64,000 nt of DNA from Schmidtea polychroa (Eukaryota), in NCBI GenBank assembly GCA_044892525.1, contig CM097885.1:191394001-191458000 (forward strand), given 5' to 3'. Shown piece after piece: positions 3,811-63,300 of the stretch (its first letter is position 1; each line of letters opens with the position of its first letter). Under the pieces are notes generated by a model. That model was not told the origin of the DNA. It saw only the letters and a list, made by a program, of their open reading frames with translations, and made no database searches. Position numbers and translations under genes: made by a program.

Positions 3811-3814
3811 TTTA

Positions 3815-20184: not shown

Positions 20185-20450
20185 TTGTCAGCTGCAATTC
20201 GCTTTTCTAAATTCTTTATTTAGATTATGTTGCATCACATACATTTGCTAATTATCTACTAAGAGTATTTTCATCAAAAATACATATTCCTGCTAACTTT
20301 CCTGTAATTCGTTTAATTGACTTTTCCGCGTATTAATTGCATGAGCTGCATGACTTTTATCACCTCTAGTGTCAATTCGATGGCTATTGGGCAAGTAAGT
20401 TATTCTCATTGATAAAATATTGGCAAAGATATATCAAGTGCTTTTTATGA
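20185..20450. repeat. Diverged dispersed repeat, inverted relative to about 63490-63810
   Basis: Shared blocks include TCAATTCGATGGCTATTGGGCAAGTA and its reverse complement at about 63543-63568. Confidence 0.65.
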
Positions 20451-37964: not shown

Positions 37965-38569
37965 TTTTTATATCGTTTAAATAATTTTCAAATAATTCTA
38001 TTTTACATTTTATTATTTTTCTATCGAAAGTTTTAAGTGTTGAATTTTTTTGTTAAATTTATTTATCTCTTTATTCTATTATACGGGGTTTTTTTGATTC
38101 TTAATGTGTGATGTAACTTATTTTATTTATTTTATATTAAACCTTGATCATAAATTTTTTCAACTTTGCGGTTTTTGTGTTAGGTATTTTCGATCGATTA
38201 AAACAAACTCTCAGTTCTCGGTTTCAGCCCAACAAAAGTAACAAAAGCGTATTACCTGATGACATATTAAATTTTACTATTCTCCACTAAAGTTAATTAA
38301 AATAAAAGTAAATCTCAAACAAAATATTGAATTTACAATGTCAACAGTTAATAAGTAATATACAAATATATTTGAAGGCGTAAAAACACTGACAGAAATA
38401 TTTACAGAAAAAATAAATTTCCTTATATTTTTATTTTCGCATCTCTAAATCCAAATTTGAAAGTTTCATCATAAGAATAATACACGTGTAATAAATGTTT
38501 CAATTATTACAACTTTGTCATGAAAATTAGAAAACAGATGCTATTAGCTTAAACCAATTAGATTACTTA

Positions 38570-38830
38570 TAAAATATTTCATTCATTCATTATGCAATGA
38601 CCAATCAATATCAGTTTGTATAAAAACGAGTAAATTTCAATGATATTCATCTATTTCAAACATGTGTAACGAACATTGTGAAGTTGTTGCTGAAGTCGAA
38701 CAAGCTGCTGAAGTTGAAGAAACTGAAGCTGTTGAAGAAGTCGAACAATCAGAAACAGTTGCTGAAGAAAAAGTTGAAGAATCATCAGAATAAAATTTTA
38801 TTTTTTAATAAATTTTGATGCATTTCTATA
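38570..38830. repeat. Further, more diverged copy of the E/V-rich arm
   Basis: Matches 14200-14470 with deletions. Confidence 0.85.
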
Positions 38831-39062
38831 TTGAAAAAGTTCTGAATAATTTCTTTTTAAAATACTATTTATTAATAATTGGTATTATTATTAATTGGTA
38901 TTTATTATTTAAGTTTACAGATTTTTTTTGTGCTACTAATCTTCCCTAAGTTTTCATATTATGAACATAGGTTAAATAAAAGCTTTTTCTGTACTTATCA
39001 CAGTTTTTTAACTATAAATAGTTTATTATTTCATTTTACACGATTTTCGGACGACTTGAAAC

Positions 39063-41752
39063 CAGGGCCGCCGCGTACGATTGTTCATATTGTGCGCCGC
39101 ACAAGGGCGCCGAGTGATAAAGGCGCCGTCAGGCGCCTCTTTCACTCGGCGCCACCTCACTAAATAAAAAAAATTAAAATTAAATATAAAAAAATTAAAT
39201 GATAAAGAAGAAAAAGTGACAAATATGGATTTATTAGAGAGATACTGGAAACGCGGGCGCAACGTATACCTTATTCTAACACGCTATGAAAGCGCGCTCG
39301 TGACTTCGTGCAATGCGATCGGTGTCGATCGCTCAACTTCGTTCGATAAAGGCGTCACCGTGACGCGCGGCATTTCACATTTACGTCTAGTCAAGACCAC
39401 CACTGCATTTCTCTTCTGCGAAATCAAATATTTATTGATTTTCATCAGGCATTCATTATAAAATTTCAACGTAAGTATAATTTACAATATTAAATAACTA
39501 ATTATATATTAAATAACAATATTAAATAATTACAATGTATAATAAATTTTAACTTAAAATCCTTAGATGTCTGGAATCGGAAAAAAATCAAAATTATCAG
39601 GCGCGCAAAATAAGAAAAATAGACTTCAGCGAGAAGACGCTCGACAAAAGCTATCAGGTTCTTTAGATAAATTCACTATTAAAACTATTAATCCTACTAC
39701 GACTGCAACGGAAGAAAATCAAGACCTGAATCTCGAAACACAAAGTTCTTCTGGTGTATCCACAAACTCTACAATAGAAAACGAATCGAAAGAAAGTAAT
39801 AAAACCGATTCCGATTCTGAAAAAATTGATTTTAATGATCCGGCTACTTGACCAAAACAAATTAATATAAAATTAAGAGATTGTTTAATAGAAAATGATC
39901 CTAAGCAATTAATTTTGAAAGACTTCCCAAAAAATGAGTCTGGACGTAAATTTTCTGATAATTATTATTATCGAACTTGATACAACACCAGACATAAGCC
40001 ATACTGAACAGTTAACCATTATCATAAGATTTGTTTATCACAATAAATCGAGAAATGTCGTGAGCATTTTTTAGGATTCCAAAGTGTAACTGACACAACC
40101 GGTGTAGGTTTATTCGAGTTCATCATTAACCATTTGAAATTAATGAACATTAATATATCAGATTTACGCGGACAGTCGTACGATAACGGAGCTAATATGC
40201 GTGGGAGACATAATGGACTTCAACAAAAAATTCTTGAAATAAATTCACGAGCTTCTTTCGTTCCATGCGCTGCTCATTCATTAAATTTGGTAGTGAACGA
40301 TGCAGCTAAAATTTCATTTGAGACGGTAAATTTTTTTAGTGTGATTCAAGAACTATATAATTATTTTTCAATTAGTGTGAAACGGTGGGATGTATTAAAA
40401 AAATACGTTAAAAACTTAACCCTAAAACCACTTTCTGCAACTAGATGGGAAAGTCGGATAGAAGCCCTGAAACCTCTGAAAATGTATATGTCAGAAATTT
40501 ATCAAAGCTCTATTAGATATCACTAATTACCACACAAAAGACATGGATTCTAGAGCTCAAGCAAATAATATAATTTCAAAAATTTGTTCTTTTAAATTTT
40601 TGTGTTCCGTCTCAATTTGGTATGATATATTGAATCTTGTCAATATTGTCAGCAAAATAATGCAAAAGCCCACATTCGATTTACAATTAGTAACAGAAAA
40701 TCTTAATTCAATTTTGAACAACTTAAAAAGTCTTAGAACTGATGATAAATTTGAAGAACTTGTGACGTCTGCAATGGCTAAAGCTAGAGAACTTGATATT
40801 GAGCCTGATTTCCCTAAAACTCGAAAGCGAAAAAAAAGGAAGTTATTCGATTACGAAGCATCAGATGATACAGTGAAGGATGCAAAACATGATTTTAAAA
40901 TTAACTTCTACTTCGCGATTCTGGACACCACTATATCGTCAATTTCAGAACGATTTCAACAATTGCAACAACACAACGAAGATTTTAAAATAATACACAA
41001 CATCAACCAACTAAAACAATGGGATAATGAGGATTTATTGAAACACTGCAAAGATTTGCATATAAAATTAACCAACGGTGCAAGCAATGAAGATATTGAT
41101 GGTATAGCTCTAAACGAAGAATTAAAAACCATTCAATTTTTTATAAAATCTGACTTGTCTCCTCACGAGGTTTTAAATTACATTTATAAAAATGCATTAA
41201 ATGAGATCTTCCCGAATATAACTATTGTATTACGCGTTTTTTAACATTACCTGTGTCTGTTGCTTCTGGAGAAAGAAGTTTCTCTAAGTTAAAACTAATT
41301 AAAAACTATTTACGGTCTACCATGAAAGAAGAACGATTAACGGACTTATCTATAATATCTATAGAAAGCGATATTTTGGATTCCATAGATATTAACGATC
41401 TCATAAAAATCTTTGTAGCTGCTAAAGCTAGAAGAGTAAATATGTAAAAAGTATTTTGATTTTTGAGTGATGAATAATTATAAAGTAATCTAAGTCTTAA
41501 TATATGTTTGAGACAAGCAAATTTTATTGATTGCTTAGATTTAGCATTATATATTGTATGTATATAACCCATGCCTGTATATTATGGTATTGTATAAGCT
41601 TTAATTATATTTTAAAATAAAAGTATTCATTGGAAATATTCTAATGATTAAATTCATAACAAGTCATAGTTTTTGACATGGGAGTTCAGTTCAGGGAAGG
41701 GCGCTGAAAAAAATCTGGCACAAAGGCGCCTCTTACCCACGCGGCGGCCCTG
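39063..41752 (+). mobile_element. Internally deleted hAT transposon, 2690 bp, perfect 14-bp TIRs, 8-bp TSD CTTGAAAC
   Basis: CAGGGCCGCCGCGT...ACGCGGCGGCCCTG; TSD at 39055-39062 and 41753-41760. Transposase fragments span 39567-41447 with a deletion junction near 39978. Confidence 0.95.
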
Positions 41753-42487: not shown

Positions 42488-42639
42488 TTTTTATGTTATA
42501 TCGTTTAGAGTTCGGTATCGTATTTATAACAACATCAGTGTAAGTCTCTTCATTTACTATACTAACTTACCAACCATCCTAAAAAATTATAACAGCAAAG
42601 GATAATAGAAAATTAATTTAGTTTCACTAACATTTACTG

Positions 42640-43040
42640 ATAAATAATGAGTAATAGATCAAATTATATTTTTGCACACAAAAATTGATCTTAATTATTA
42701 TGCAAACATTCATAAAAATTAATCTCGATAAATGATTGACTTGATTGATCACAATTTTTAATTTATTACTTTAATTTAATCAAATAATAAATTATTACAA
42801 GAACCAATCACATTCGATCCGCATGATCCAATCACAGTGCGAATAATGGCTGAAATATTTTGCCATGTCTAAATTATGTTGACTTTTTAAAGTATTGCAG
42901 ATATATTTCTTTCTAATAATATTGTTAAGTTGACATTTTGGGGTACGGGGGGTACGGTAGGATATTCGATAATCTCATTAATTGTCATTCCTTCATATCC
43001 ATTTCTCACCAAAATGTCAATATATTTTTTTTAATTAATT
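42640..43040 (+). repeat. Host repeat copy whose continuation is split across 44735-44759 and 60011-60120
   Basis: The three pieces join in order to match 61490-62020. Confidence 0.75.
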
Positions 43041-44802
43041 TTTTTTCATTTCAATTATTTTTCAAATTTTTTTTATTTCGCAATGATTTTTGTACATTTA
43101 AATATTCATCTGGACAACTCCAAAATATATTAAGAAATAAACCAAATGAAGCTTTAAGGTCAAATTTACAAAATAACTTACTGAGTGACGAATATTATTT
43201 TTTTCATAAAATTATTAAATTGTATTTACTGCTGTCATTTTATCCGTTTGAATATTGTTGGGTTTTAGCTAATTTAAGTCGGTAACCTCTGACTCCTCAT
43301 GTCCTTTTAATCAAAACAATAAACTACCCAAGGTATATTTGAATCACAAAAATATATTTCTATCGACAATTAATCACCAAAGTTTTACAAGTTTGACCGA
43401 TTCTCCGCTCGGTGTTGATGCTTTGACAAAAGATAATATTCACCTTTTTATTTCTTCAGCTTCTTTCGACCAACGATTCCTTTTGCTATTTAATTTGATT
43501 CCTTTTCCCTTTTTCATATCTCCTATTCTATATTTTCTTTTCTCTAATCTCATAAATTCGTTTTTGCCGTTTGCCTATTCTCGTTTCTTCTTACCCTAAC
43601 TGAGGCAAAATTCCGATTATTTTGAATTTCGACTTTGATTTTATACTGGAATAATCACTTTGATTAATCGATTTTTGACCTGATTGCTCCTATCTGACAA
43701 TGGTTTGACAACCGGCTCCTTGAACGTTGTTTGCACCATATCATGATTAATTGGCTGCCTTTGCTATTCCTTCGTAATAGTCCTACCTTTGTTTGTCTCT
43801 ATTAATCATGCTGTCATGATTATGGTCTTACGAGATTCTCATTTTGTTTACTTTTCATGTTAATCGATCTCGGGTTCTTCATTGACTCGGGTTTTTTATT
43901 AGCCAATTAATGAATGAATTAACAATTTTTTGTTTTAACACATTTGAATGCTTTTTGACCCTTTCTAACCATTTTCTGACAAATCCCTAATCATCATCTT
44001 GTTGACCATCAGCTAATCTATACCTGTTCCGTTTTCCCCATTCAATTTAGATAACTTTACAATTTATTGATTTTTCTCGCATTTCCAGATTCTTGCCCTT
44101 CGCAATTGCTATTGCCATTTCCTAATATTGCTTCCATCATACTTTCCTTTGCTATCAATTATGTGCATGATCACGCTTTTATTTGTCTTTTCCTTCACCT
44201 ACTTTTTATTTAAATTTTCAACCTAAATTTATTTAAATTTATTTTAATTTACTGACTTCAACTATATTATTATTGAAAATGACACATTCAGACGAGTTAT
44301 CGAAATAAGAGAAGATATAAAAGAAGTAAATGTGTTTATGACAAGGGGATTTCATCAATTTTAAAGGAATATATCAGCATGATTTGTGCAAATAAAACAC
44401 CTGAATATGACATTTGGACACTACTGTAAGACTTCAAAACTTTTTTTCCAAGACAGATATTGATGCACTTCGTTAAAAGTTATACACAAAATCTTCCTGA
44501 AGTACATAGCTCTTTATCTGTACGTTCTTATGAAAAGCTATATTTTCCATCAAAAATATCACCAAGTTTATTCTTTATTCTCCTAACTGGTTACATTCGA
44601 TATTTCATAACATCATATTTTGAAATAATGCCACAAACAGCTATACGTTCCATGTACCTATGTTTGGAAAGATGTGAACAGTTGGCAAGTTTATTAATAA
44701 TCTCTCATTACTAACCCTTGAGCAAATTATTTTCAATTTATCATTTCTTCATTGAGGCTAGTAGGTAGATAGTAGCCCACTGCAGCAATGACCCCCCCGG
44801 TG

Positions 44803-44875
44803 GGGGGGGGTTCTGCAGCAACTTTTTTTTTGCTGCAACTTTTTTTGCTGCAACTTTTGATTACGCAATTTTTCA
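44803..44875 (+). repeat. Left 73-bp terminal inverted repeat (G8 plus three TGCAAC-T(n) units)
   Basis: Reverse complement of 59938-60010 with one mismatch (44817); T-run lengths are identical. Confidence 0.95.
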
Positions 44876-45555
44876 GACTATAGTGAGGGGGTCTCGATGG
44901 TCCTGGGATTTTCAATACAAAAAAATTTTTTCTATACAAAAACGATGGTCCTGGAATTTTCAATACAAATAAAATTTTTTCAATACAAAAATCCGACTAC
45001 CACTAAAAAAGCATGGAATTTTCAGACTATAGTGAGGGGGTCTCGATGGTCCTGGGATTTTCAATACAAAAAGCTGGTCTACACTAAAAAAGCATGGTAA
45101 TTTAAGGTCTCAGGATATTTTCAATACAAAAAGGTTGTCTTCAATAAAAAAGCATGGATTTTTCTAGGTCAATTCAGGTGAGTCTCCTTGGTCCTGAGAA
45201 ATAGGTGGTCTACACTAAAATAACGTGGTAATTTAAGGTCTCAGGATATTTTCAATACAAAAAGGTGGTCTTCAATAAAAAAGCATGGATTTTTCTAGGT
45301 CAATTCAGGTGAGTCTCCTTGGTCCTGAGAAATAGGTGGTCTACACTAAAAAAACGTGGTAATTTAAGGTCTCAGAATATTTTCAACACAAAAAGCTGGT
45401 CTACACTAAAAAAGCATGGTAATTTAAGGTCTCAGGATATTTTCAATACAAAAATCCGACTACCACTAAAAAAGCATGGAATTTTCAGACTATAGTGAGG
45501 TGAGTCTCCTTGGACCTGAGAAATAGGTGGTCTACACTAAAAAACGTGGTAAATT
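44876..45555. repeat. Satellite A, left arm (modular units sharing GGTCTACACTAAAAAA)
   Basis: Recurrent ~60- and ~70-bp modules, mirrored at 56680-58765. Confidence 0.9.
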
Positions 45556-46180
45556 TTTCAATTAAAGTAAATAATGGTTCTAAAAAATTAAATTACAGTA
45601 AATTATGGTCCTAAAAATTAAATTACAGTAAATTATAGTCCAAATTTTTAAATTAAAGTAAATTATGGTTCTAAATTTTAAATTAAAGTTAATTAAGGTC
45701 CAAATTTTTAAATTAAAGTAAATAATGGTTCTAAAAATTAAATTAAAGTAAATTAAGGTTCTAAATTTTAAATTAAAGTAAATTAAGGTTCTAAAAAATT
45801 AAAATAAAGTAAATTATGGTCCAAATTTTTAAATTAAGTAATCAATGGTAAAAAATTTTAAATAAGTAAATTAAAGTAATAATTTTTAAATTAAGTAATC
45901 AATGGTAAAAAATTTTAAATAAGTAAATTAAAGTAAGATTTTAAAATTTAATTACAAAAAGTTGAAGGTGTTTGAGAATTGAAATTTTTTAATGAAAATT
46001 TTCAATGGTAATTTTTAATGAAAATTTTTATGGAATATTTTTTTAAGTAATTTTTAATAGAAAATTTTATGAAATATTTTTCAATGGTAATTTTTAATAG
46101 AAATTTTTATGAAATATTTTTCAATGATAATTTTAGATGGAAATTTTTATGAAATATTTTTCAAAGACAAATTTTAATAA
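45556..46180. repeat. Satellites B (~30-bp AAAGTAAATTATGGTYCTAAAAATT) and C (~40-bp TTTTAATGAAAATTTTTATGAAATA), left arm
   Basis: AT-rich tandem arrays mirrored at about 55860-56680. Confidence 0.88.
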
Positions 46181-46189
46181 TAATTCAAC

Positions 46190-48030
46190 AACAAATCAAC
46201 AACTTAGTACCAACAACCAGTAACTTACGAACATGTATTACCAACCAGATACCTACAACCAGTTACCTGATACCAAGTACCAACAACCAAAACATGCAAC
46301 CAACTAGGTACCAAGTACTAACAACCAACTACTAAGTACTAACAACCAAAAACAACCAACCAGGTACTAGATACCAAGTACTAACAACCAAGTAACTTAC
46401 CTAGTAATAAGCACTGTCAACTAGTTACTAACAACCAGTTACCTGCTACCAAGTACTTACAACTAGTTACTAACAACCAATTACCTGCTACCAAGTACTT
46501 ACAACTAGATACCACGTACTAACTAACTCTCAACCCCCACCTACCCATTAACTAGTTACCAAGTACTTACAACTAGATATCACGTACTAACAACCGTCAA
46601 CAACCAGGTACTAAGCCTTATCAACCTACAACTAGTTACTAACAACCAGTTACCTGATACCAAGTAAATACAACCACCTAACAAGTACTAACAATCAAAA
46701 ACAATCAACCAACTAGGTACCAGATACCAACTAGCTACCAAGTACTAACAACCAACAACAACCAGGTACTAAGCATTAATTACTAACTACTAAGTACCTA
46801 CAACCTACAACTAGATACTAACAACCAGTTACCTGATACCAAATACTTACAACTAGATACCAAGTACTATCAACCAAAAACAACCAACCAACTAGCTACC
46901 TGTTACCAAGTACATACAACAAAACAACCAACCAACTAGGTTCCAAGTACTTACAACTAACTACCAAGTACATACAACCACCTACCAATTACCTAGCTAC
47001 AACCTACAACTAGATACCAAGTACTATTAACCAAAAACAACCAACCAACCAGTTACCTGATACCAGATACCTACAACTAGATACCTACAACTAGTTACCT
47101 GATAGCAACCAACTAGGTACCAGATACCAAGTACTAACAACCACCAACAACCAGATACCTACAACTAGTTACTAACAACCAGTTACCTGCTACTAAATAC
47201 CTACAACCAACTAGCTACCACCTACCAAGTACTAACAACTAGATACTAACAACCAGTTACCCATTAACTAGCTACCAACTACTAAGTACCTACAACCACC
47301 TACCCATTAACTAGCTACAACCAGTTAACAACTAGCTACCACCTACCAATTAACTAGCTACAACCAGCTAACAACCAGTTACCTGCTACCAAGTACTTAC
47401 AACTAGTTACTAACAACCAATTACCTGCTACCAAGTACTTACAACCAACATCAACCAGGTACTAAGCATCATCAACTAGATACCAAGTACCTACAACCAA
47501 CTAGCTACCACCTACCAATTAACTAGCTACAACCAGCTAACTAGGTACTAGATACCAAGTACTAACAACCAGTTACCAACTACTAAGCATTAATTACCTA
47601 CAACTAGTTACTAACAACTAGTTACCTGATAGCAAGTACTTACAACTAGATACCACGCACTAACTAACTCTCAAACAACCAGATACTTACAACCAGTTAC
47701 CAACTACTAACTACCTACAACCACCTACCCATTAACTAGCTACAACCAGCTAACTAGGTACTAGATACCAAGTACTAACAACCAGTTACCTGCTACTAAG
47801 TACCTACAACCACCTACTAAGTACCAACAACCAACAACAACCAGCTAACAACTAACTACCACCTACCAAGTACTAACAACCAGCTAACAACTAACTACCA
47901 CCTACCAAGTACCTACAACCAACTACCAAGTACCAAGTACTAACAACTAGCTACCACCTAACAAGTACCAACAATCAACTAGCTACCAGATACCAAGTAC
48001 CTACAACCAACTACCAAGTACTAACAACCA
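46190..48030. repeat. Satellite D, left arm: aperiodic C/A-rich array of shuffled short words (TACCAAGTAC, TAACAACC, AGTTACCTG, CCCATTAACTAGC)
   Basis: The strand is strongly G-poor; mirrored as a G/T-rich array at about 54585-55800. Confidence 0.9.
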
Positions 48031-48525
48031 GATGACCACGTGAAATTATTAATTAAATAGGTAAAATAATGTTTAATTTTTAAATTAACTAATCAATGAT
48101 CTAAAATATTAAAGTTAAAGTCAATTTAAGATGCAAATCTTAGTCAATTAATCAATGACCACATGAAATTATTGGTTAAATATGAAAATAAGGGTTATAA
48201 TTAGTTGTTTAGTAAATTATGGCGTAAAATTAAGTAATAAAGGATAAATAGGCAAAATAAGGATAAGTAAATTAAAGTTAAAAATTTTAAATAAGTAAAT
48301 TAAGGTTCAAAATTTTAAATTAAAGGAAACAATGGTTTAAATTTTAAATTAAAGCTAAATGAGTAAATTAAAGTAATAATTTTTAAATAAGTAATGTAAT
48401 AAGTAAATTAAACTAAGATTTTTAAATTTATTAACAAAAAATAGAAGGTGTTTGAGAATTGAAATTTTTTAATGAAAATTTTTATGAAATATTTTTTAAG
48501 TTAATTTTTAATGGAAATTTTAATG

Positions 48526-48556
<31 letters not shown>

Positions 48557-49025
48557 TCAACAGTTACCAACAATCGGTTACTAAATATTTTTAACTAGGT
48601 GCTAACAAATACTTACAACATGATACCACGTACTAACTAACTCTCAAACAACCAGATACTTACAACTAACTACTAAATATTCTTCACTGTATTTTATGAA
48701 ATGCATTTTTAAATTAATATTTTTTATACAGCTTCTATAATAATTTTAATTACAATCAGTAGAAAAACCTTTTCAAAATGTCTAAATTTAACAAAAATGT
48801 TGATTTTCATCAAAAAACCACAACTCAACCACTTTAAAACACCACGTGGAATTCAAAATAATTACAATGAAAGACTAATGAATTCTAATTTACAAAACAT
48901 TCTTCTTTTAAATGATAACTACTGACTTATTATTGCAAAGTAAAAATCGCATTCAATATATACTTATTGTTGATCAGTTTTATTATATATACTCTGAGTT
49001 TATCCGACAGGATGTTTTGACCCCC

Positions 49026-49090
49026 TAAGGGTACTGGTCGTAAGGGTACTGGTCGTAAGGGTATTAGTCGTAAGGGTACTGGTCGTAAGG
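49026..49090. repeat. 15-bp tandem repeat TAAGGGTACTGGTCG (~4.3 copies)
   Basis: An inverted array of about 3.5 copies lies at 53701-53753 and a degenerate third array at about 52171-52250. Confidence 0.9.
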
Positions 49091-49863
49091 ATATTGCTAA
49101 CTCTCAACCCCCACCTACCCATTAACTAGCTACTAAGTACTAACCACTAGGTTTCAAACAACTAAATACTAAACACTAACAACCAACAACAACCAGGTAC
49201 TAAGCATTATCAACCTACAACTATATAACAACAATCAGTAAACAACACTGTACCTACTACCAAATACAAGATACCACCTACCAAGTACCAACAATCAACT
49301 AACAACACATAAAAATAATAGCAATTAAATACAAAATATTCTTCATCGCATACACTATTTTCTTATCAAAATCTAAAAAGTCAACCAACTACTTACAACC
49401 TACAACTATGTACTAACAAATTGATCTTTAAAAGCAAATACTCATCACTTGAAAAAATTAGATGAAAAATTAATTGAACTCAGGGCACTTTTAAGATATT
49501 TGAACTCAAGGCATCAATAACTTAGTAAAAATTGATTAAATTATTGTAAAAATTTAAATTATTCAAAATATACTAAATTAAAAAAATATAATTAATAGAC
49601 AAGAAAGAACTTTAAATTCTAGTCATTGATCATTCAAGTTAATATGAATCAACTAAGATAATAAATTAATAAGAATTTTGAAATAAGATCTAGTAGATAA
49701 TTGATTTAGATTGAATAAATTAATTTAAATAAAATTAAATTTAATTATTTTTTGTAAAAGTAATACATGTACTCAAATTGATTGACTGATTTCTCAATAT
49801 ATTCAAAAAATCAGTATAAATTCATTACAATTATCAAAGTCATCAATCTACAATAAAAATAAT

Positions 49864-52800
49864 TATCATAAAATTCCAAAAGACACTGATAACTAATGAT
49901 AACATCTAATAAACCAGTAAATTTATTTAAATGACAATAATTGGTATATCCTAGTGAATTCTCCAATTTCTCATTTCCTCCCAAATATATCAATATGTAA
50001 AGATTGGTATTGTAATGATAAATACTTGTTAAAGATCATATATTCACCTCAAACTAACAAGATTCCTTAAAATCCCTTAAATGACTATATTTCTACCCTT
50101 AATTCATATTATTACAAATATTTCACTAAAATCATCTAAAAAGCATCAAATTTCATTGAAATAACTCTATCTTTTAAGATTGATATTTTAATGATAAGTA
50201 CTTGTTAAAGATCATATATTCCCCTCAGACTAATAAGATTGCTTAAACTCCCCTTTAAATGACTATAATTCTAACTTTAATTCCTATTATCATACATGTT
50301 TCACTATTGATAAAACCAGTTATAATTAAATTTTTGTTAATCACTGTAAATTTTTGTAAATCACTGTACTTGAAATTTAAAATAAATATAACTGACTAGG
50401 TCCCATTGAAAGATTAAATTTATCCATTCAATAAAATATATTTCTTCAAATGATCATTTTTACCAATATTCAACCGATTTAATTACTAATTAAAATCAAG
50501 TTTCCTTTCAATAAAGATCAATTTTATTTAGTGTTTGTCGATGTTTTAAGTCCATATTTCTCAACTTTTGTCATTCTCCGCCTAAATAAAGATAAAAATA
50601 AATTAAAGTTGAAGTCAATCCCAATTATCTATAAAGATTTCATTGTCAAAACCAAGTAAATCGATCATTATCCCTACTTAATAGAACATTGTTCTAAATT
50701 AATTTACTGTGCATTAATCACAATCTAATAAAACGATATAATTATTATTGATACATAACTGACTAATTGACATTTCCCTTAAAACATTGATATTTTACCA
50801 ACAGCATACTTAAAAAATCATATATTCCCATCTTAACCCATCTCTCATTAAATTCAATCGACTATATCCCCCTTACAATGATATATTCCCAACTTATCTG
50901 ATCTCTCATTAAAATCAATCGACTATATCCCCCTTACAATGATATATTTCCATCTTATCTGATCTCTCATTAAATCTAACCGACTATATCCCCTTAAAAA
51001 ATCATATATTCCCACCTTATCTGATCTCTCATTAAATCTAACCGACTATATCCCTTTAAAAATCATATATTCCCATCTTAACCCATCCCTCATTAAATCT
51101 CACCGACAATATCCCATCTTATCCGATCTCTCAGCAAATAATTCTACCCTTTTAAACATCTATCCGATTATATCCCTTATTTTCCCTAAAGATTCCGCCC
51201 ACTTGAGCCCTTTAATATATATCAATCCTCTTAAAATCCTCAGAGAAATTCAAAAATATGACTTTTAATTAATTTTTATAGAACCAGACAAATAATAAGA
51301 GCCCATTAAAAGATCAAAATTCACTAAATTTTCTACAAATATTTACCATCAAATACTGGAGATGATATATATTGTTTGATCATAATTCTTCAGCTATTCA
51401 ACCAATCATTTTCAAGCAATAACAGCAAACTAAATTTCTGTATATCCTACAATAATTATCAAGTAAATTTAAAGTCATTGATAAAGTTGGTTTCTTAGCT
51501 TATGTTTTTTAAAGATCATCAATGTGTAAATATTCTTAGAAAATTATTGAAAAATTATTTATTCAAATATATTACAAAGTTATCATCAAAAATTTATTCT
51601 ATCACTTAATTATTAACCTAATTGTCAATGAAATTAATTTTTATTTAAAAACTATTCAATAAAATACCACTAATTATCAAGAAATTAACTAAATTTATCA
51701 ATTAAATTTATCACCATTAAAACTTTTAATCAGTCAACATGAAATTCTTAGAGAATTATTCAATATCCTCATAAAAATTTATCATATCACTTCATTATTG
51801 TAAAATCTCTAATTATTAACCTCATTGAAAATAATTTTTATTTAAAATTAAAAAAAACAAGTCAATAAAAATACATCCAATTATCAAGAAATTAATTAAA
51901 TTTATCTTAGAATTAGCATTAAATTATTAAATATTCATTCAATAAACATGAAATTTGCAAAAATGTTAGAAATCCATGAAAATGATAGATATCTACAAAA
52001 ATTACGGATATTCACAAAAAAGTATGGAAATTCATGAAAATATTAGAAATTCATAAAAATGATAGAAATTCACAAAAAAGATAGAAATTTACTTGAATAA
52101 AACCATCAACTCTAAAAATTATCAATACCTTAAACATCAAATTTGCCTAAATAATCATTCAAATAAAAACATTAAATACCTTTACGACTAATACCCTTGC
52201 GACATGTTGAATGTGAGTAGTACCCTTGTGAGCAATACCCATAGGGGGACAGAATATTTTGTCGGATAAACTCAGAGTATATATTAATTAACTCATTTAT
52301 CATTGAATTAGTCAAATTATCATAAATTTCGATAAAAAATCTAAAGTGGTAAGCAATGTAAAGAGAAATATTCTTTAAACTTTGATAAAATTAACAATGA
52401 AGGTGGTAAGAATCTTCATTAAAATGAGGAAATTACTCGATGATAAATTCAAATGGGTGAAAATAATTGGTAGAATAATTCATTAATGGATCATTGAATG
52501 GGCATATATAAGATGAAGTTTGATAAGAATGGAAATATATTATTTAAAATTATTTCATAAAATTCATAAATTTAATAAAAAAAAAACAAATATTTGTGGG
52601 GAATAATTAATCAAAATCGGGGGGATATTAGTGATTAATTAATGGGAAATAGAGAATCGGGGAATATAAGTGAATAATTAATGGAAAATCAGTGGAAAAT
52701 ATAGAGATTAAATAGTGGAGAATAATAGTGAATATAAGTGAGGAGGATATATAATTTAAGATAGTTTATTACATAACAAGCCATGACTAGGTTATTACAT

Positions 52801-52970
52801 AACAAGCTGTGATTGGTATTTTACCAACATTTTACCTAGTATATAATTTAATTTTAATTGTATTTTTAATATATTATTGTTTAATTCCAATGATAAGTTT
52901 AAATAGTCTTTAATGATTAATAAATTAATATCTTGAGAATTTAAAAAACTTTACTTAAAATTTTTGAAGT
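49864..52970. other. Central non-palindromic spacer with internal tandem duplications
   Basis: Arm homology stops at 49863 and 52971. Contains ~180-bp duplications (about 49990-50300 and 51590-51910), a ~60-bp array and a ~20-bp array (about 51960-52090). Confidence 0.75.
50815..51130. repeat. ~60-bp tandem repeat, about 5 copies
   Basis: Unit approximately ATATATTCCCATCTTATCTGATCTCTCATTAAATCTAACCGACTATATCCCCTTAAAAATC. Confidence 0.88.
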
Positions 52971-54208
52971 ATTATTTTTATTGTAGATTGCTGACTTTGA
53001 TAATTGTAATGAATTTATACTGATTTTTTGAATATATTGAGAAATCAGTCAATCAATTTGAGTACATGTATTACTTTTAAAAAAATAATTAAATTTAATT
53101 TTATTTAAATTAATTTATTCAATCTAAATCAATTATCTACTAGATCTTATTTCAAAATTCTTATTAATTTATTATCTTAGTTGATTCATATTAACTTGAA
53201 TGATCAATGACTAGAATTTAAAGTTCTTTCTTGTCCATTAATTATATTTTTTTAATTTAGTATATTTTGAATAATTTAAATTTTTACAATAATTTAATCA
53301 ATTTTTACCAAGTTATTGATGCCTTGAGTTCAAATATCTTAAAAGTGCCTTGAGTTCAATTAATTTTTCATCTAATTTTTTCAAGTGATGAGTATTTGCT
53401 TTTAAAGATCAATTTGTTAGTACATAGTTGTTGCTTGTAAGTAGTTGGTTGACTTTTTAGATTTTGATAAGAAAATAGTGTATGCGATGAAGAATAATTT
53501 TTTTTATTTAATTGCTATTATTTTTATGTGTTGTTAGTTGATTGTTGGTACTAAGTTGTTGGTTTCTTGTATTTGGTAGTTGGTACAGTGTTGTTAATTT
53601 CTCGATGGGTTTTGATGGTGGTTGTTAGTACATGGTATCTAGTTGTTAGCTGATTGATAGTAACTACTTAATGGGTAGGTGGGGGGTTGAGAGTTACCAA
53701 TACCCCTACGACTAGTACCCTTACGACTAATACCCTTACGACCAGTACCCTTAGGGGGTCAAAACATCCTGTCGGATAAACTCAGAGTATATATAATAAA
53801 ACTGATCAACAATAAGTATTTATTGAATGCGATTTTTACATTGCAATAATAAGTTATCATTTAAAAGAAGAATGTTTTGTAAATTAGAATTCATTAGTCT
53901 TTCATTGTAATTAAAATTATTTTGAATTCCACGTGGTGATGAGTTGTGGTTTTTTGATGAAAATCAACATTTTTGTTAAATTTGAAAAGGTTTTCTAATG
54001 ATTGTAATTAAATATATTTTTGAAGATAGATAAAAAATTAATTTAAAAGGCATTTCATAAAATACAGTGAAGAATATTTAGTAGTTAGTTGTAAGTATCT
54101 GGTTGTTTGAGAGTTAGTTAGTACGTGGTATCATGGTGTAAGTATTTGTTAGCACCTAGTTAAAAAATAATCAGTAACCGATTGTTGGTAACTGTTGAAT
54201 TATTAGTA

Positions 54209-54211
<3 letters not shown>

Positions 54212-54270
<59 letters not shown>
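54212..54270. repeat. (TTA)~20 microsatellite; mirror copy (AAT)~10 at 48527-48556
   Basis: Read directly. Confidence 0.95.
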
Positions 54271-54271
<1 letters not shown>

Positions 54272-54584
54272 CATTTAAATTTCCATTTAAATTTTCATTA
54301 TAAATTACATTTCTCAAAAAAGTTGGTGGTTATTCAATCTTTTGATAATAAATTTAAAAATCTTACTTTAATTTACTTATTTAGCTTTAATTTAAAATTT
54401 GAACCATTGGATACTTAATTTTAAATTTTGAACCATTGTTTTCTTTAATTTAAAATTTTTAACTTTAATTTACTTATCCTTAATTTACCTAATTATTCTT
54501 TATTTCTTAATTTTACACCATAATTTACTTAACAACTAAATATAATCCTTATTTTCATATTTAACCAATAATTTCATGTGGTCT

Positions 54585-55800
54585 TCTGGTTGTAAGTGTT
54601 TGGTATCTAGTTGACAGTGCTTAGTACTAGGTAAGTTACTTGGTTGTTAGTACTTGGTTGATAATGCTTAGTACCTGGTTGTATGTACTTGGTAGGTGGT
54701 AGTTAGTTGTTAGTACTTAATGCTTAGTAGTTGGTAACTGGTTGTTAGTACTTGGTAGGTGGTAGCTAGTTGGTTGTAGGTACTTAGTAGTTGGTAGCTA
54801 GTTGAGTGTTGGTTGTAGCTAGTTAATGGGTAACTGGTTGTTAGTATCTAGTTGTAGGTACTTGGTAGGTGGTAGCTAGTTGTTAGCTAATTGTTGTGGG
54901 TTGTTGGTACTTAGTAGTTGGTAGCTAGTTAATGGGTAGGTGGTAGCTAGTCTGTTGTAGGTACTTAGTAGTTGGTTGATAATGCTTAGTACCTGGTTGT
55001 TGACGGTTGTTAGTACGTGGTATCTAGTACCTAGTTGGTTGGTTGTTAGTACTTAGTATTTAGTTGGTTGATAATGCTTAGTACCTGGTTGATGTTGGTT
55101 GTTAGTACTTGGTAGTTGGTTGGTTGCTGTTAGCTGGTTGTAGGTACTTAGTAGCTAGTTAATGGGTAGGTGGGGGTTGAGAGTTAGTTAGTACGTGGTA
55201 TCTAGTTGTAAGTACTCGGTAGCAGGTAATTGGTTGTTAGTATCTAGTAGTAGGTATCAGGTTGATGTTGGTTGTAGGTACTTAGTAGTTGGTAATTAAT
55301 GCTTAGTACTTGGTTGTTGTTGGTTGTTAGTACTAGTTAGGTGGTAGTTAGTTGTTAGCTGGTTGTTGTCGGTTGTTAGTACTTGGTAGGTGGTAGTTAG
55401 TTGTTAGTACTTGGTAGGTGGTAGATAGTTGTTAGTACTTGGTACCTAGTTGGTTGCTTGTTTTTGGTTGTTAGTACTTGTTAGGTGGTTGTAGGTACTT
55501 GGTAGGTACTTAGTAGTTGGTAATTAATGCTTAGTACTTGGTTGTTGTCGGTTGTTGGTACTTAGTAGGTGGTTGTAGGTACTTAGTAGCAGGTAACTGG
55601 TTGTTAGTACTTGGTATCTAGTACCTAGTTAGCTGGTTGTAGCTAGTTAATGGGTAGGTGGTTGTAGGTACTTGGTAGTTGGTAACTGGTTGTAAGTATC
55701 TGGTTGTTTGAGAGTTAGTTAGTGCGTGGTATCTAGTTGTAAGTACTTGCTATCAGGTAACTAGTTGTAGGTATCTGGTTGGTAATACATGTTCGTAAGT
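54585..55800. repeat. Satellite D, right arm (G/T-rich strand)
   Basis: Uses the reverse-complement vocabulary of 46190-48030 in a different word order and length. Confidence 0.9.
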
Positions 55801-55859
55801 TATTGGTTGTTGGTACTAACTTGTTGATTTGTTGTTGAATTATTATTAAAATTTGTCTT

Positions 55860-56680
55860 TGAAAAATATTTCATAAAAATTTTCATTAAAAATTATCATT
55901 GAAAAATATTTCATAAAAATTTCCATTAAAAATTACCATTGAAAAATATTTCATAAAATTTTCTATTAAAAATTACCATTGAAAATTTTCATTAAAAAAT
56001 TTCAATTCTCAAACACCTTCAACTTTTTGTAATTAAATTTTAAAATCTTACTTTAATTTACTTATTACATTACTTTAATTTACTTATTTAAAATTTTTTT
56101 ACCATTGATTACTTAATTTAAAAATTTGGACCATTATTTACTTTAATTTAATTTTTAGAACCTTAATTTACTTTAATTTAAAAATTTGGACCATAATTTA
56201 CTTTAATTGAAAAATTTGAACCATAATTTACTGTAATTTAATTTTTTAGAACCATAATTTACTGTAATTTAATTTTTTAGAACCATTATTTACTGTAATT
56301 TAATTTTTTAGGACCATAATTTACTGTAATTCAAAAATTTTGACCATAATTTACTTTTAATTTAATTTTTTAGGACCATAATTTTTTGTAATTCAATTTT
56401 TAGGACCATTATTTACTTTAATTGAAAAATTTTGACCATAATTTACTGTATTTGAAAAATTTGGACCATAATTTACTTTAATTTAATTTTTTAGGACCAT
56501 AATTTACTGTAATTCAAAAATTTTGACCATAATTTACTGTAATTTAATTTTTAGAACCATAATTTACTTTAATTTAAAAATTTGGACCATTATTTACTAT
56601 AATTTAATTTTTAGAACCATAATTTACTTTAATTTTAAAATTTGGACCATTATTTACTTTAATTGAAAAATTTACCACGT
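55860..56680. repeat. Satellites C and B, right arm
   Basis: Reverse complement of 45556-46180 with more B units. Confidence 0.88.
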
Positions 56681-58765
56681 TTTTTAGTGTAGACCACCTA
56701 TTTCTCAGGACCAAGGAGACTCACCTCACTATAGTCTGAAAATTCCTTGGCTTTTTTAGTGTAGACCAGCTTTTTGTATTGAAAATATCATGAGACCTTA
56801 AATTACCATGCTTTTTTAGTGTAGACCACCTATTTCTCCGGACCAAGGAGACTCACCTCACTATAGTCTGAAAATTCCTTGGCTTTTTTAGTGTAGACCA
56901 GCTTTTTGTATTGAAAATATCCTGAGACCTTAAATTACCATGCTTTTTTAGTGTAGACCAGCTTTTTGTATTGAAAATATCCTGAGACCTTAAATTACCA
57001 CGTTTTTTAGTGTAGACCACCTATTTCTCAGGACCAAGGAGACTCACCTCACTATAGTCTGAAAAATCCTTGGCTTTTTTAGTGTAGACCATCGTTTTTG
57101 TATTGAAAAAATTTTATTTGTATTGAAAATCCCAGGACCATCGAGACCCCCTCACTATAGTGTGAAAATTCCATGCTTTTTTAGTGGTAGTCGGATTTTT
57201 GTATTGAAAATATCCTGAGACCTTAAATTTCCACGTTTTTTTAGTGTAGACCACCTATTTCTCAGGTCCAAGGAGACTCACCTCACTATAGTCTGAAAAA
57301 TCCTTGGCTTTTTTAGTGTAGACCACCTATTTGTATTGAAAATATCCTGAGACCTTAAATTACCATGCTTTTTTAGTGGTAGTCGGATTTTTGTATTGAA
57401 AATATCCTGAGACCTTAAATTACCACGTTTTTCTAGTGTAGACCACCTATTTCTCAGGACCAAGGAGACTCACCTCACTATAGTCTGAAAAATCCTTGGC
57501 TTTTTTATTGATAGTAGGATTTTTGTATTGAAAATATCCTGAGACTTTAAATTACCATGCTTTTTTAGTGTAGACCACCTATTTCTCCGGACCAAGGAGA
57601 CTCACCTCACTATAGTCTGAAAATTCCTTGGCTTTTTTAGTGTAGACCAGCTTTTTGTATTGAAAATATCATGAGACCTTAAATTACCATGCTTTTTTAG
57701 TGTAGACCACCTATTTCTCCGGACCAAGGAGACTCACCTCACTATAGTCTGAAAATTCCTTGGCTTTTTTAGTGTAGACCAGCTTTTTGTATTGAAAATA
57801 TCATGAGACCTTAAATTACCATGCTTTTTTAGTGTAGACCACCTATTTCTCCGGACCAAGGAGATTCACCTCACTATAGTCAGAAAATTCCTTGGCTTTT
57901 TTAGTGTAGACCAGCTTTTTGTATTGAAAATATCCTGAGACCTTAAATTACCATGCTTTTTTAGTGTAGACCAGCTTTTTGTATTGAAAATATCCTGAGA
58001 CCTTAAATTACCACGTTTTTTAGTGTAGACCACCTATTTCTCAGGACCAAGGAGACTCACCTCACTATAGTCTGAAAAATCCTTGGCTTTTTTAGTGTAG
58101 ACCATCGTTTTTGTATTGAAAAAATTTTATTTGTATTGAAAATCCCAGGACCATCGAGACCCCCTCACTATAGTGTGAAAATTCCATGCTTTTTTAGTGG
58201 TAGTCGGATTTTTGTATTGAAAATATCCTGAGACCTTAAATTTCCACGTTTTTTTAGTGTAGACCACCTATTTCTCAGGTCCAAGGAGACTCACCTCACT
58301 ATAGTCTGAAAAATCCTTGGCTTTTTTAGTGTAGACCACCTATTTGTATTGAAAATATCCTGAGACCTTAAATTACCATGCTTTTTTAGTGGTAGTCGGA
58401 TTTTTGTATTGAAAATATCCTGAGACCTTAAATTACCACGTTTTTCTAGTGTAGACCACCTATTTCTCAGGACCAAGGAGACTCACCTCACTATAGTCTG
58501 AAAAATCCTTGGCTTTTTTATTGATAGTAGGATTTTTGTATTGAAAATATCCTGAGACCTTAAATTACCATGCTTTTTAGTGTAGACCACCTATTTCTCA
58601 GGACCAAGGAGACTCACCTCACTATAGCGTGATAAATCCTTGGCTTTTTTATTGATAGTAGGATTTTTGTATTGAAAAATTTTTTTTTGTATTGAAAATC
58701 TCAGGACCATCGTTTTTGTATAGAAAAAATTTTTTTGTATTGAAAATCCCAGGACCATCGAGACC
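56680..58765. repeat. Satellite A, right arm, expanded, with a 1013-bp higher-order duplication
   Basis: Identical ORF-track peptides at 57278-57463 and 58291-58476 (offset 1013). Modules begin TTTTTTAGTGTAGACC. Confidence 0.92.
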
Positions 58766-59229
58766 TTATTATCTTATTACCTCCCCTTGTCTTATTATCA
58801 CCTTTCTTACTAATACTTGTTACTATTATTTATACTTTTGCTATTGTCTCTACTATTACTGTTATTGTTAATATTGTTGTTGTTATTACTATTGTTATTA
58901 CTATTATTATTTTAATTATTATTATTATACATATCATCATCTATAAATACGGTACCGAGTGTCAATCACCGAATAGGTTAATGTAGGAACCCTTGTAGGG
59001 GTTCTGCCTATTTGGTGGTCTTTTTAGTTGTTTATATTAATATTATAATAATCTCTACTATACTATTGATACTATTATTTTCATTACTAATATTCTAATA
59101 CTACTATATCATCCGAACCTTCAACTCCTTTTAATGTATACTATAATAAGTAACTATCACTGCGCTATAAACCTCGCGGGGGAGCCTTCCTGCTCCAACT
59201 TTTACATGTATTTAGGAGAATCCCGGAAC

Positions 59230-59570
59230 ATATCAACTGCTACCTGATCTCTCCTATCATACAATATAAGAACGTCCCGTGTGCAATCAATCTACTCTAT
59301 CATCACACCGAGACCTGCTTCAATCACAACCGAATTCACTCCTACGATCAAATCTCGGAAAACATCAACTACTACCTGACCTCTCCTATAAGAAAGTCCC
59401 GTGTGCAATCAATCTACTCTATCATCACATTGAGACCTGCTACAATCACAACCGAATTCATTCCTACGATCAACCCTCGGAAAACATCAACTACTACCTG
59501 ATCTCTCCTATCACACAATATAAGAACGCCCTATGTGCAATCAATCTATTCTATGTGACCTGCTACAAAA
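59230..59570 (+). repeat. ~120-125-bp tandem repeat, about 2.5-3 copies, in the right-arm-specific segment
   Basis: Recurrent GTGTGCAATCAATCTACTCTATCATCACA...GAGACCTGC...ATCAACTACTACCTGA. Confidence 0.8.
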
Positions 59571-59937
59571 AATCTATATCCTTATCTATATATAAGTATA
59601 CCAAAGCATTACCTTATCTACAATCAGTCTATCTCCTATCTATACGAGACATGGCTGATCAAACCTGTGATTAGCCGTGTTTATACCTACTCTTCTCAAA
59701 GATGCCTACCTATAAATGTTGAATGAGACTTCAGGAGCTTCAAAATGGAACCCAGACCACAAGCCAGACTGAAGGTTTCAAAGAAAAACACGTTAGATGA
59801 AGGAGTATTGCACTCTAACATCCACAGAGTATTGAATAAAAGCAGCAGACTACATAAGGGTGAGAATCGATCTCCCCTTCCTGGCCAGGTGGCCCTAGAC
59901 ATTTAGTTAAAATAAAATTTGATTTTTTTTTTTTTTT

Positions 59938-60010
59938 TGAAAAATTGCGTAATCAAAAGTTGCAGCAAAAAAAGTTGCAGCAAAAAAAAAGTTGCAGCAG
60001 AACCCCCCCC
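59938..60010 (-). repeat. Right 73-bp terminal inverted repeat
   Basis: Partner of 44803-44875, followed immediately by TGAGGCT. Confidence 0.95.
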
Positions 60011-60305
60011 TGAGGCTGTAATTAAAAGAATAATTAAATCCTTCAATATATCTCAATTTGACTAACTAAATCTGACTAATAAAATACTCCATTGGACACT
60101 GGCTTCGTTGTACATTATCAGAAATTAAATCATAAAAATAGAAACCGGAGCCCATTATTTCTCATGCAATTGTCACCAAGTATCACTAAAATTCTCGAAG
60201 CGAACCAAATAAGGAGTTGCTGCTTCTTCTCTGTGAAATGGTTCACTATTTGTCACTAGACAATGTTTGAAAATGTGATTGGGATAGGAATAGAAAGGCA
60301 ATTGC

Positions 60306-63300
60306 TTATTGTAATTGTAAATTAAATGAATGTTTAAAGAGAAGTTTCACTTTTATTAGAGCGACTAATACTAACAGTTCAGGAACTAAGCAAAGAAAAT
60401 TGAGACTGCATATATCTTCTAAAAGAATAAGTGCGTGCTCAGATGGGACTTTCACCACTTTCCTCAGACCTTCTCGCATATAAATGAATGACAACGCACT
60501 TAAGTTGACATGCAATATGGCCACAACCTCCAATAATATTGTTTGCAATTAATATAAATGCTAGATTATACGTTTTGATAGTTTTGTAAGTTTTTTTTGC
60601 TATGTCATTTTATCATTTCTTGCTTCAGTTGTCAAGGAAAAGCTGATAGAATAAAAAGAAATCAAAAATAAAATATTTCATTTGCTGTTATCCAAAATAT
60701 TTCAACATAGAAATGGGTAAAATAAAATATCAAATATTTGTGTACTGACCAGTTAATAAGTAGTATACAAATATGAAATTTGTTGAAAATTAATTTTTTT
60801 TTGAAAATCTTTTTCATTATTTTTATTAATTAGCCAAAATTAAAGTTGAGCATACCAGCAGAAATTTTTAAGGTTGTATTGTGCATCTTGCGGAATTTTA
60901 TAACTTTGAAAATTCAATTGCAAAAATTTAGCATACCGTTGGCCTATCATCTGGATATACTAGCATACTCAAATTTGTTTTTAAGGTACAAATTTGTTAT
61001 TTCTTTATCATCAACACAAGTATCTTGTGAGAGATCTTTTTCAAAGTTAAAATGTTTAAGTCAAAAATATTTGGAGGCATTTATGCTTATGGCGTGCGAA
61101 AAAGATATTCTAAATAACATTGACAATAGAGCAATTGATATAATGAGAGAAAAAAGAGTAATGTTAAAAAAACTTGTTTAATTTTAATAATATTTATTTA
61201 ATTATTTATTTAATTGATTTTTGTTACAATTATTAATAAACTTATTATTATAATAAATATATTTATAAATTACAAATGTACTTTTTTGATATTTTTTTTC
61301 TTAAATTTAATATTGTGGGCCTACGTCACCGATATTTTCCGATGTGTTTCCAGTCTAGCCCTGATTATAGTTATATAAATTTTCGTTAGTTTTAATATTT
61401 TGTGAAATGTTAAGCGTGAAAATACTTTTTTGATAAGCAGCGCTTGATATTCATTGTCTTTTGTTGTCGCAAACGTTCACTAGCAGTTACTGATACTTAA
61501 TGAGTAATAGATCAAATCATATTTTTGCACACAAAAATTGATCTTAATCATTATGCAAACAATCATAAAAATTCATCTCGATAAATGACTCACTTGATTG
61601 ATCACAATTATTAATTACAACATTCGATCATATAATAAATTATTACAAGAACCAATCAGATTCGATTCACATGATCCAATCACAGTTTGAATAATGGCGG
61701 AAACATTTTGCCATCTCTAAATTATGTTGAATTTTTAAAAATTGTAGATATATTTCTTTCTAATGAAATTGTTGATTTATGTTATATTGTTCTGTAGGAT
61801 ATTGGATAATCTCATTAATTGTCATCCCTTCATATCCATTTGTTCATGTGTTCATTTGTTCCCAAAAATGTCAATATTTTTAAATAAATTGTCAATTTAT
61901 CATTTCTTCATTGAGGTTGTAATTAAGGGAATAATTAAATCCTTCAATATATTTCAATTTGACTAAATCTGACCTAAAAAATACTCTATTGAACACTGGC
62001 TACGTTGTACAATGACAGAATTTAGAAATATACCTCGTCATATTCCTCCAATATCCCTGAAAATTGTGCAACGTAAAAAAATCAGTTGATTCTTCTACAT
62101 ATCGTATCAGTTGTTCTTCATTTTCAGGTCGCATTGTCATCACAGTACTTTTTCATTTGGAAAACAAATTTTCTATCGGGTTCAGAAATGGCGAAGAGGA
62201 TGGTAGAAAAAGTAATTTAAAATTCGTATTATTAATCAAACACGAAACTTCTCTGCAATGATGAAACCTTACATTATCCTTTATAAAAATTCCGGATTTA
62301 ATATTTTTTGAGTGAAGCAACTCAATAAACCTCATAAAACCTCGCGAAATTTCACCATGTTTTATGATGTTTTTGTAACAACCTTGAAATACTCCCCAGA
62401 AACAGACATCGCTGCACAAATAGATAAATTTTTATTCCTTTTCGACGGAACTCGCATCATTGCTTCTTTTCCAATCAAAGCTCTTCCACCACACCCTAAT
62501 CGTTGAAAAAATAAAGTTCCTGTCGAGTTTGCTGCGCATTGCATATTTCATCGTCAGCATTAGGTTGTAAAATATCTGAGTGAACGCCTCCATAAATTAG
62601 ATGAATGTTTAAAGAGAAGTTTCATTTTTATTAGAGCGACTAATACTAACAGTTCAGGAACTAAGCAAAGAGAATTGAGACTTCATATCTTCTAAAGGAA
62701 TAAGTGCGTGCACAGATGGGACTTTCACAAGATATTTTTTAAATCAAATGTTAGAAGTTTCTAAAATTCAATAAAAATTAGAAAATTTGAGTTTGCAAAT
62801 GTGAATAACTGCTAAGAAAGTTACTGACTGAATCTTCCATATGCTTTGAAAAAAATAAGATTTTCAATAAATGCGTGAGAAACAAAAATAGAGGTTGCTG
62901 TAATCTGAATTGGATTAGAAACATTAAGTTCTGCCACAATGTCACTCTACACGCTGTGATGGCTCATTCAAAGCTTCAGTAAACATGTCACCTTCAAGTT
63001 ATTATTAATAACCATCTCTAGATTTACATTTACTCAAGCGCATTATTATGTACCATACAACTTTTATTGCTCACCGTTTCAGTGATTTAACCACTTTCCT
63101 CAGACCTTCTCGCATGTAAATGAGTGACAACGCACCTAAGTTGACATGCAATATGGCCACAACCTCCAATAATATTGTTTGCAATTAATATAAATGCTAG
63201 ATTATACGTTTTGATAGTTTTGTAAGTTATTAGCATTTGCTATGTCATTTTATCATTTCTTGCTTCAGTTGTCAAGGAAAAGCTGATAGAATAAAAAGAA

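Follow-up and report, generated by a model that had tools for sequence, protein, structure and literature searches.

The stretch of DNA analysed here, 64,000 nucleotides long and called the window throughout, comes from Schmidtea polychroa (NCBI GenBank assembly GCA_044892525.1, contig CM097885.1, positions 191,394,001 to 191,458,000 of the forward strand). Its guanine and cytosine (GC) content is about 30%, it contains no N bases, and it is dense with repeats and with transposon open reading frames (ORFs) of the hAT and pogo-like types. At positions 44760-60010 lies an element of 15,251 bp that interrupts one diverged copy of a host repeat of about 2.6 kb. In this element two long inverted arms, built largely of tandem arrays, face each other across a non-coding middle domain. 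The element is probably a non-autonomous transposon of the foldback type, a class II (cut-and-paste) DNA element, of which this would be one copy.

An insertion flanked by a 7-bp duplication

The host repeat is present in the window as plus-strand copies at 60821/60947-63465 and 2413-3815 and as a minus-strand copy at 24272-26774. The interrupted copy is more diverged, and its parts can be traced on both sides of the element: on the left at 42623-43004 and 44729-44759, on the right at 60011-60127, 60318-60455 and 60450-60821. We aligned both junctions, four sequences in all, with the two paralogs that are uninterrupted at this point (61870-61975 and, as its reverse complement, 25750-25855). 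On the left flank, host homology extends through the heptamer that abuts the element, and on the right flank it begins at the second copy of this heptamer (Table 1). Both flanking copies read TGAGGCT, whereas the paralogs hold the heptamer a single time, as TGAGGTT, so that the two flanks share the same C variant. Because the flank homologies meet at a heptamer that the paralogs hold only once, 44760-60010 is an insertion with a 7-bp target-site duplication (TSD). Thus, the two flanking heptamers, the uninterrupted host sequence at both paralogs and the reading of the shared C variant as a mark of duplication, all put forward in the initial annotation, are borne out by the alignment.

The length of the duplication can be bounded as well. 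The bases adjoining the heptamer on both sides exclude a TSD of 8 bp or longer, and 7 bp is the simplest reading. A TSD of 6 bp would be possible solely if the T at 60011 belonged to the element. The 6-bp GAGGCT with AG...CT ends that had been offered as an alternative is therefore possible but less parsimonious. As a control of the method, the hAT element at 10674-13965 gives the expected 8-bp TSD when compared with its own uninterrupted paralog.

The same host-repeat copy carries a further irregularity: a segment of about 1.7 kb at 43005-44728, some 30 bp upstream of the foldback element, is a second insertion or a replacement. Part of this segment (43256-43618) is 80% identical to 30795-31161.

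Arms made of mirrored tandem arrays

We compared the two arms directly with each other, and called tandem arrays with Tandem Repeats Finder (TRF). The left arm (44803-49875, 5.1 kb) and the right arm (52959-60010, 7.05 kb) are colinear in inverse orientation, with identities of 75-97% between them, and TRF periods of about 131/60, 30, 13/40 and 7-28 bp are found in both (Table 1). The 7-28-bp array is strongly strand-biased. The mirror order of satellites around a spacer described earlier holds, but the count of four was too low, since the inner domain contains no fewer than four additional small arrays that are mirrored too. The first unit of array A, the first of the arrays inward from the left end, runs on directly from the inner edge of the end repeat.

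Similarity between the arms is uneven along their length. Left and right inner domain 2 are 97.2% identical, with 18 substitutions and 2 indels, and inner domain 1 is 88% identical when gaps are ignored. Outside the best segment the arms diverge by 12-25%, and the outer arrays by 14-25%. Right array A contains an internal duplication of 1,013 bp (56668-57666 = 57681-58678, 98% identity), which accounts for much of the difference in arm length. Where the left arm has about 17 bp, the right arm has the 1.17-kb segment restricted to it. This segment possesses neither inverted ends nor a duplication of its own, and a clean nested transposon was rejected for that reason.

Table 1. Positions in the window of the parts of the element, of its flanking and empty sites, and of matches within the host repeat
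Feature	Position	Strand	Evidence or remark
Left TSD copy, TGAGGCT	44753-44759	.	Host homology passes through; paralogs have TGAGGTT, once
Right TSD copy, TGAGGCT	60011-60017	.	Host homology begins here
Uninterrupted paralogous site, next host-repeat unit	61888-62024	+	Junction alignment
Second uninterrupted paralogous site	25701-25839	-	Junction alignment
Left terminal extension, 43 bp, outside inverted repeat	44760-44802	+	
Left inverted repeat (flanking domain), 73 bp	44803-44875	+	Three GCTGCAAC/CTGCAGCAAC motifs spaced by T runs
Left outer domain, array A (48-bp pair, then ~60/131-bp units)	44876-45556	+	TRF, arm comparison
Left array B, 30-bp period, ~12.8 copies	45550-45930	+	TRF
Left array, 13/40-bp period	45977-46179	+	TRF
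Left array, 7/14/21/28-bp period, C+A-rich, G 8%, 1.83 kb	46197-48030	+	TRF
Left inner domain 1, mostly unique, small 28/39-, 13-, 3- and 15-bp arrays	48157-49083	+	
Left inner domain 2, unique	49241-49875	+	
Middle domain, 3,083 bp, 24% GC, non-coding	49876-52958	.	
Right inner domain 2	52959-53595	-	
Right inner domain 1	53696-54583	-	
Right 7-28-bp array, G+T-rich on + strand, C 8%, 1.25 kb	54587-55835	-	
Right array, 13/40-bp period	55838-56004	-	TRF
Right array B, 30-bp period, ~19.8 copies	56076-56674	-	TRF
Right array A, 2.1 kb, contains 1,013-bp duplication	56672-58765	-	
Right-arm-only segment, 1,172 bp, own 3-18-bp and 122-bp arrays	58766-59937	.	
Right inverted repeat, terminal, 73 bp	59938-60010	-	
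RNase P RNA match	2884-3163	-	32.5 bits (gathering score 28)
RNase P RNA match	62889-63168	-	32.4 bits (gathering score 28)
RNase P RNA match	24565-24844	+	27.7 bits (gathering score 28)

Such an arrangement calls for two alternatives to be weighed. Long-read assemblies are known to fail at long inverted repeats that enclose a short spacer, and the palindrome could in principle be the product of such a failure, either a fold-back chimeric read or a mis-join. A chimeric read would give near-identical arms, which makes this origin unlikely here: the arms are 3-25% apart, with many indels, differences in copy number and a 1.17-kb segment on one side only. Moreover, a unique middle of 3.1 kb separates them, and both outer junctions match one host-repeat copy to the base, with the TSD. 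We thus hold an assembly artefact to be very unlikely.

Alternatively, a small element with the 73-bp inverted ends may have inserted first, most of the 15 kb having grown later in place through array expansion, inverted duplication of internal sequence and nested insertions. Growth of this kind has left traces in the 98% duplication that enlarged the right arm, in the segment restricted to that arm and in the unequal copy numbers of the arrays; the innermost segment, at 97.2% identity against 84-88% further out, also looks as if it had been recruited late. The mirror order, however, extends over every module between the termini and the centre, and marks of nested insertion (internal duplications, internal inverted ends) are absent. 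In addition, the TSD is perfect and the end repeats match at 72 of 73 positions while the outer arrays are 14-25% apart, so much of the divergence between the arms looks older than the insertion. In-place growth of most of the element is therefore unlikely, even if some of it is evident in the right arm.

A non-coding element

The middle domain has 61-bp and 19-bp arrays of its own and, at about 52177-52291, a third copy of the 15-bp-repeat segment; we looked for residual symmetry within it and found none. The spacer of about 3.1 kb that had been recorded earlier corresponds to this domain. The longest stop-free stretch of the whole element, 134 codons, lies within the 122-bp tandem repeat. 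None of ten stop-free stretches of the element matched Pfam at E<=0.01, and Rfam gave no match inside the element. The earlier remark that no recognisable protein ORF is present is thus upheld and, being non-coding, the element is non-autonomous.

Asymmetric termini

The end repeats of 73 bp (44803-44875 against 60010-59938) are identical at 72 of 73 positions. A 44-nt core of this repeat has two sites in the window, the two ends of the element, where shuffled sequences lead one to expect none. At the right end the inverted repeat is terminal. At the left end it begins 43 bp inward. The 73-bp terminal inverted repeats of the initial annotation thus exist, and are terminal on the right but not on the left. 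Inverted correspondence between the two extreme ends of the element is limited to their first two bases (AG...CT).

The left extension is unique within the window. It supplies the C run of a C7-GGT-G9 hairpin, formed with the start of the inverted repeat (fold z = -5.6 for 44753-44880), and holds one additional direct copy of the CTGCAGCAA motif. Over its first 16 nt it differs at two positions from a unit of the 7-28-bp array, a similarity equalled in 2 of 300 shuffles. The extension may belong to a truly asymmetric end, or may have been gained in an earlier event. It was rejected as a plain inverted copy of the repeat tip, as pairing is limited to the G/C run. We also rejected a composite of two complete elements, since the end repeat is present just twice, and a retroposed insertion, since neither end has an A or T tail.

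Two further alternatives turn on these ends. In one, a fragment of extrachromosomal palindromic DNA would have been captured once where a chromosome had broken in a staggered way, and neither a transposase of its own nor a family would stand behind it. The left 43 bp, filler-like and partly resembling internal array units, would suit such an event, as would the fact that just one copy is known. An exact short TSD without loss of host bases is the mark of strand transfer by a transposase or integrase, and this is what the 7-bp TSD of the element displays; the inverted repeat at its ends, moreover, is near-perfect and contains short motifs several times over. One-off capture is accordingly highly improbable.

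In the other, the element would be a gene-less derivative of a Polinton/Maverick, with a 6-bp GAGGCT TSD and ends in AG...CT, and an autonomous relative would have supplied the integrase that moved it. The overall length does fall within the Polinton range, and if the T at 60011 were the element's, the duplication and the ends would take this form. Yet seven identical flanking bases are the simplest reading, and the inverted repeats expected at the very ends are missing: inverted correspondence of the ends stops after two bases, and the left repeat lies 43 bp inward. No protein-primed DNA polymerase B, retroviral-type integrase or capsid module was found, with no open frame above 134 codons and no Pfam match, and arms made of tandem arrays are a foldback structure. 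The comparison with Polintons made in the initial annotation thus does not hold, and we give a Polinton derivative hardly any credence.

Comparison with known transposons

The domain order is that of the published foldback layout, in which flanking, outer tandem-repeat, inner and middle domains follow one another (PMC4079207, figure 1 and text). Long inverted arms make up most of the element, an outer domain of tandem repeats is followed by a unique inner domain and a middle domain, and the whole is flanked by a TSD of 7 bp, as read against two empty paralogous sites. The element therefore fits a known structural class, the foldback elements. To this extent the earlier verdict that the element fits no family cleanly was overstated, all the more so because comparable non-autonomous copies of Galileo have been described (PMC4168063). 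The description of a giant non-autonomous, satellite-carrying element survives as regards the insertion with its TSD, the absence of coding sequence and the several tandem-repeat families in long inverted arms. The element is unusual in its size (15.25 kb in all, 5.1 and 7.05 kb in the arms), in how many different arrays it carries and in its asymmetric left end.

Galileo, a member of the P superfamily in Drosophila with non-autonomous two-arm copies, resembles the element in having a 7-bp TSD and long, internally repetitive inverted arms; a non-coding copy of 9,021 bp has arms of 4,246 and 4,680 bp (PMC4168063). In both, arm lengths vary between the arms (in Galileo also between copies). The expansion of tandem repeats and the recruitment of internal sequence, by which arms are extended in Galileo (PMC4168063), may likewise have extended the arms here. 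Unlike Galileo, the element is larger in total and in each arm, carries several unrelated arrays instead of one, has an asymmetric left end and holds no remnant of a THAP/DDE transposase; the likeness is one of structure. Tetris of Drosophila virilis shares with the element its domain order, outer repeats that derive from the flanking domain, its non-autonomous state and a link with satellites, but differs in its TSD of 8-10 bp, in its provisional placement in Mutator, in its one main repeat family (about 220 bp) and in its much smaller size (PMC4079207).

FB of Drosophila, Tm1 of nematodes and Rehavkus of beetles are also alike in having composite inverted arms of tandem repeats and mostly non-coding copies. 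Foldback elements are usually such non-coding copies, moved in trans, and the TSDs of FB and Rehavkus measure 8-10 bp, mostly 9 bp. In Tribolium, Rehavkus-type foldback elements bear satellite arrays in their arms (10.1101/2024.12.02.626372). The Tm1 foldback family has a TSD of 9 bp (8-10 bp) and, inside it, asymmetric outermost motifs, though these are just 7 bp long (PMC3169594). In the element of S. polychroa the asymmetry amounts to 43 bp and affects one side only, and its 7-bp TSD argues against membership of the Mutator-related foldback elements, with their duplications of 8-10 and mostly 9 bp.

TSD length also bears on the other candidates. A hAT element requires 8 bp, the length seen at the hAT element in the window itself, and a pogo element is likewise argued against. 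Helitrons and Helentrons have no TSD, and are recognised by asymmetric ends with a 3' hairpin, whereas here a clear 7-bp TSD is present. By contrast, duplications of 7-8 bp are those of the P superfamily and Galileo. The TSD is thus a weak pointer to an enzyme of the P/Galileo kind, and away from the Mutator-like one of most foldback elements, as a lead and not as an assignment.

A model for transposition

The insertion, its duplication and its architecture are plainly visible in the alignments; from them we infer how the element might have moved. Because the domain order is that of the published foldback layout, cut-and-paste by a transposase encoded elsewhere is the most likely mechanism. 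A transposase encoded elsewhere in the genome would have bound the reiterated motifs in the ends, and possibly also motifs in the adjoining arrays. Excision of the element by this enzyme would have been followed by its integration at a staggered cut of 7 nt. The arrays of the arms would expand and contract by unequal exchange or slippage, of which the 1-kb duplication in the right arm may be an example, and the innermost segments would either have kept their similarity through exchange between the arms or have been recruited into the arms recently.

A more far-reaching version can be envisioned, to which we allow only a slim chance. The element would then belong to a new line of giant DNA transposons, non-coding and so far undescribed, in this AT-rich animal lineage. 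Such transposons would have intrinsically asymmetric ends (a 43-bp terminus with a hairpin on the left, a plain end on the right), a 7-bp TSD and a transposase not yet linked to foldback elements, and would serve as a vehicle that spreads half a dozen unrelated tandem-repeat families through the genome.

Other copies and points against a mobile foldback family

We searched for further copies within the window and beyond. Metagenome contigs contained no exact match to a 28-nt core (end repeat) or a 25-nt core (array A). A scan of viral contigs for the element, a search of the full text of papers for six of its 18-22-mers and a search of protein space with stop-free translations across the left terminus and array A gave nothing either; as eukaryotic genomes are not among the sets searched, the negatives carry little weight. 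The seeding of satellites proposed in the initial annotation is not supported, as none of the element's repeats is present elsewhere in the window and these searches gave no external copy.

Several observations weigh against a mobile foldback element and against the P/Galileo lead in particular. In the remaining 49 kb of the window, no part of the element is found again; one copy is known, so a mobile family is putative. The termini are asymmetric, the inverted repeat being terminal at one end only. Concerning the enzyme, this copy has no coding remnant of the THAP-domain DDE transposase of the P superfamily. Nor did we see, in the window, a P-type transposase or any transposase sharing the element's ends, the transposon ORFs there being those of hAT and pogo. 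TGAGGCT, finally, is unlike the Galileo target consensus printed in PMC4168063, although a single site is weak evidence. These points notwithstanding, a non-autonomous foldback transposon is still the reading that we consider likely.

Other features of the window

Within every unit of the 2.6-kb host repeat, the model of nuclear RNase P RNA matched over its full length (Table 1), and a conserved GAAGGUCUGAG block is aligned in the matches. Since each host-repeat unit has a match, the RNase P RNA-like sequence is multi-copy and lies inside a partly tandem repeat.

The hAT element at 10674-13965 is apparently complete, with inverted termini and an 8-bp TSD, CATGTAAT, as seen against the uninterrupted paralog at 34166-34200. 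Its transposase, which has a DUF4371 and a hAT dimerisation domain, is split over two overlapping ORFs (11116-13029 and 13005-13703), suggesting one frame break; its best relatives, about 57% identical, are spread across insects and other animals. Next to it, a second long inverted-repeat structure has arms of about 1.17 kb at 13966-15135 and 19053-20191, with 93-99% identity and a spacer of about 3.9 kb. Its repeat family is also found at 9318-10674, 32333-34187, 34351-34879 and 38404-38834.

On the plus strand at 37230-37964, an ORF of 244 codons combines parts of a LIM domain, a Rab/Ras GTPase and a proteasome alpha subunit. A stretch of 171 nt of this ORF has 90.6% identity with an unrelated ENA contig, in which a different chimera (EAP30 and proteasome) is encoded. 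The ORF looks like a repeat bearing captured gene fragments. On the minus strand at 499-1582, two ORFs (DDE_1 and HTH_Tnp_Tc5) are the remnant of a pogo/Tc5-type transposase. A match to the histone 3' stem-loop model at 39127-39178 on the plus strand (22.5 bits against a gathering score of 34) is below threshold and probably due to chance.

Significance

On its own, a single copy opens no new question, and the link between foldback elements and satellites is already documented for Tetris, Galileo and Rehavkus. Palindromes of this length are potential hotspots of rearrangement and are difficult to assemble. If other copies exist, the element would be among the largest non-autonomous foldback-type elements described. 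In that case one mobile unit would carry many unrelated tandem-repeat families, with a bearing on how satellites are born and dispersed.

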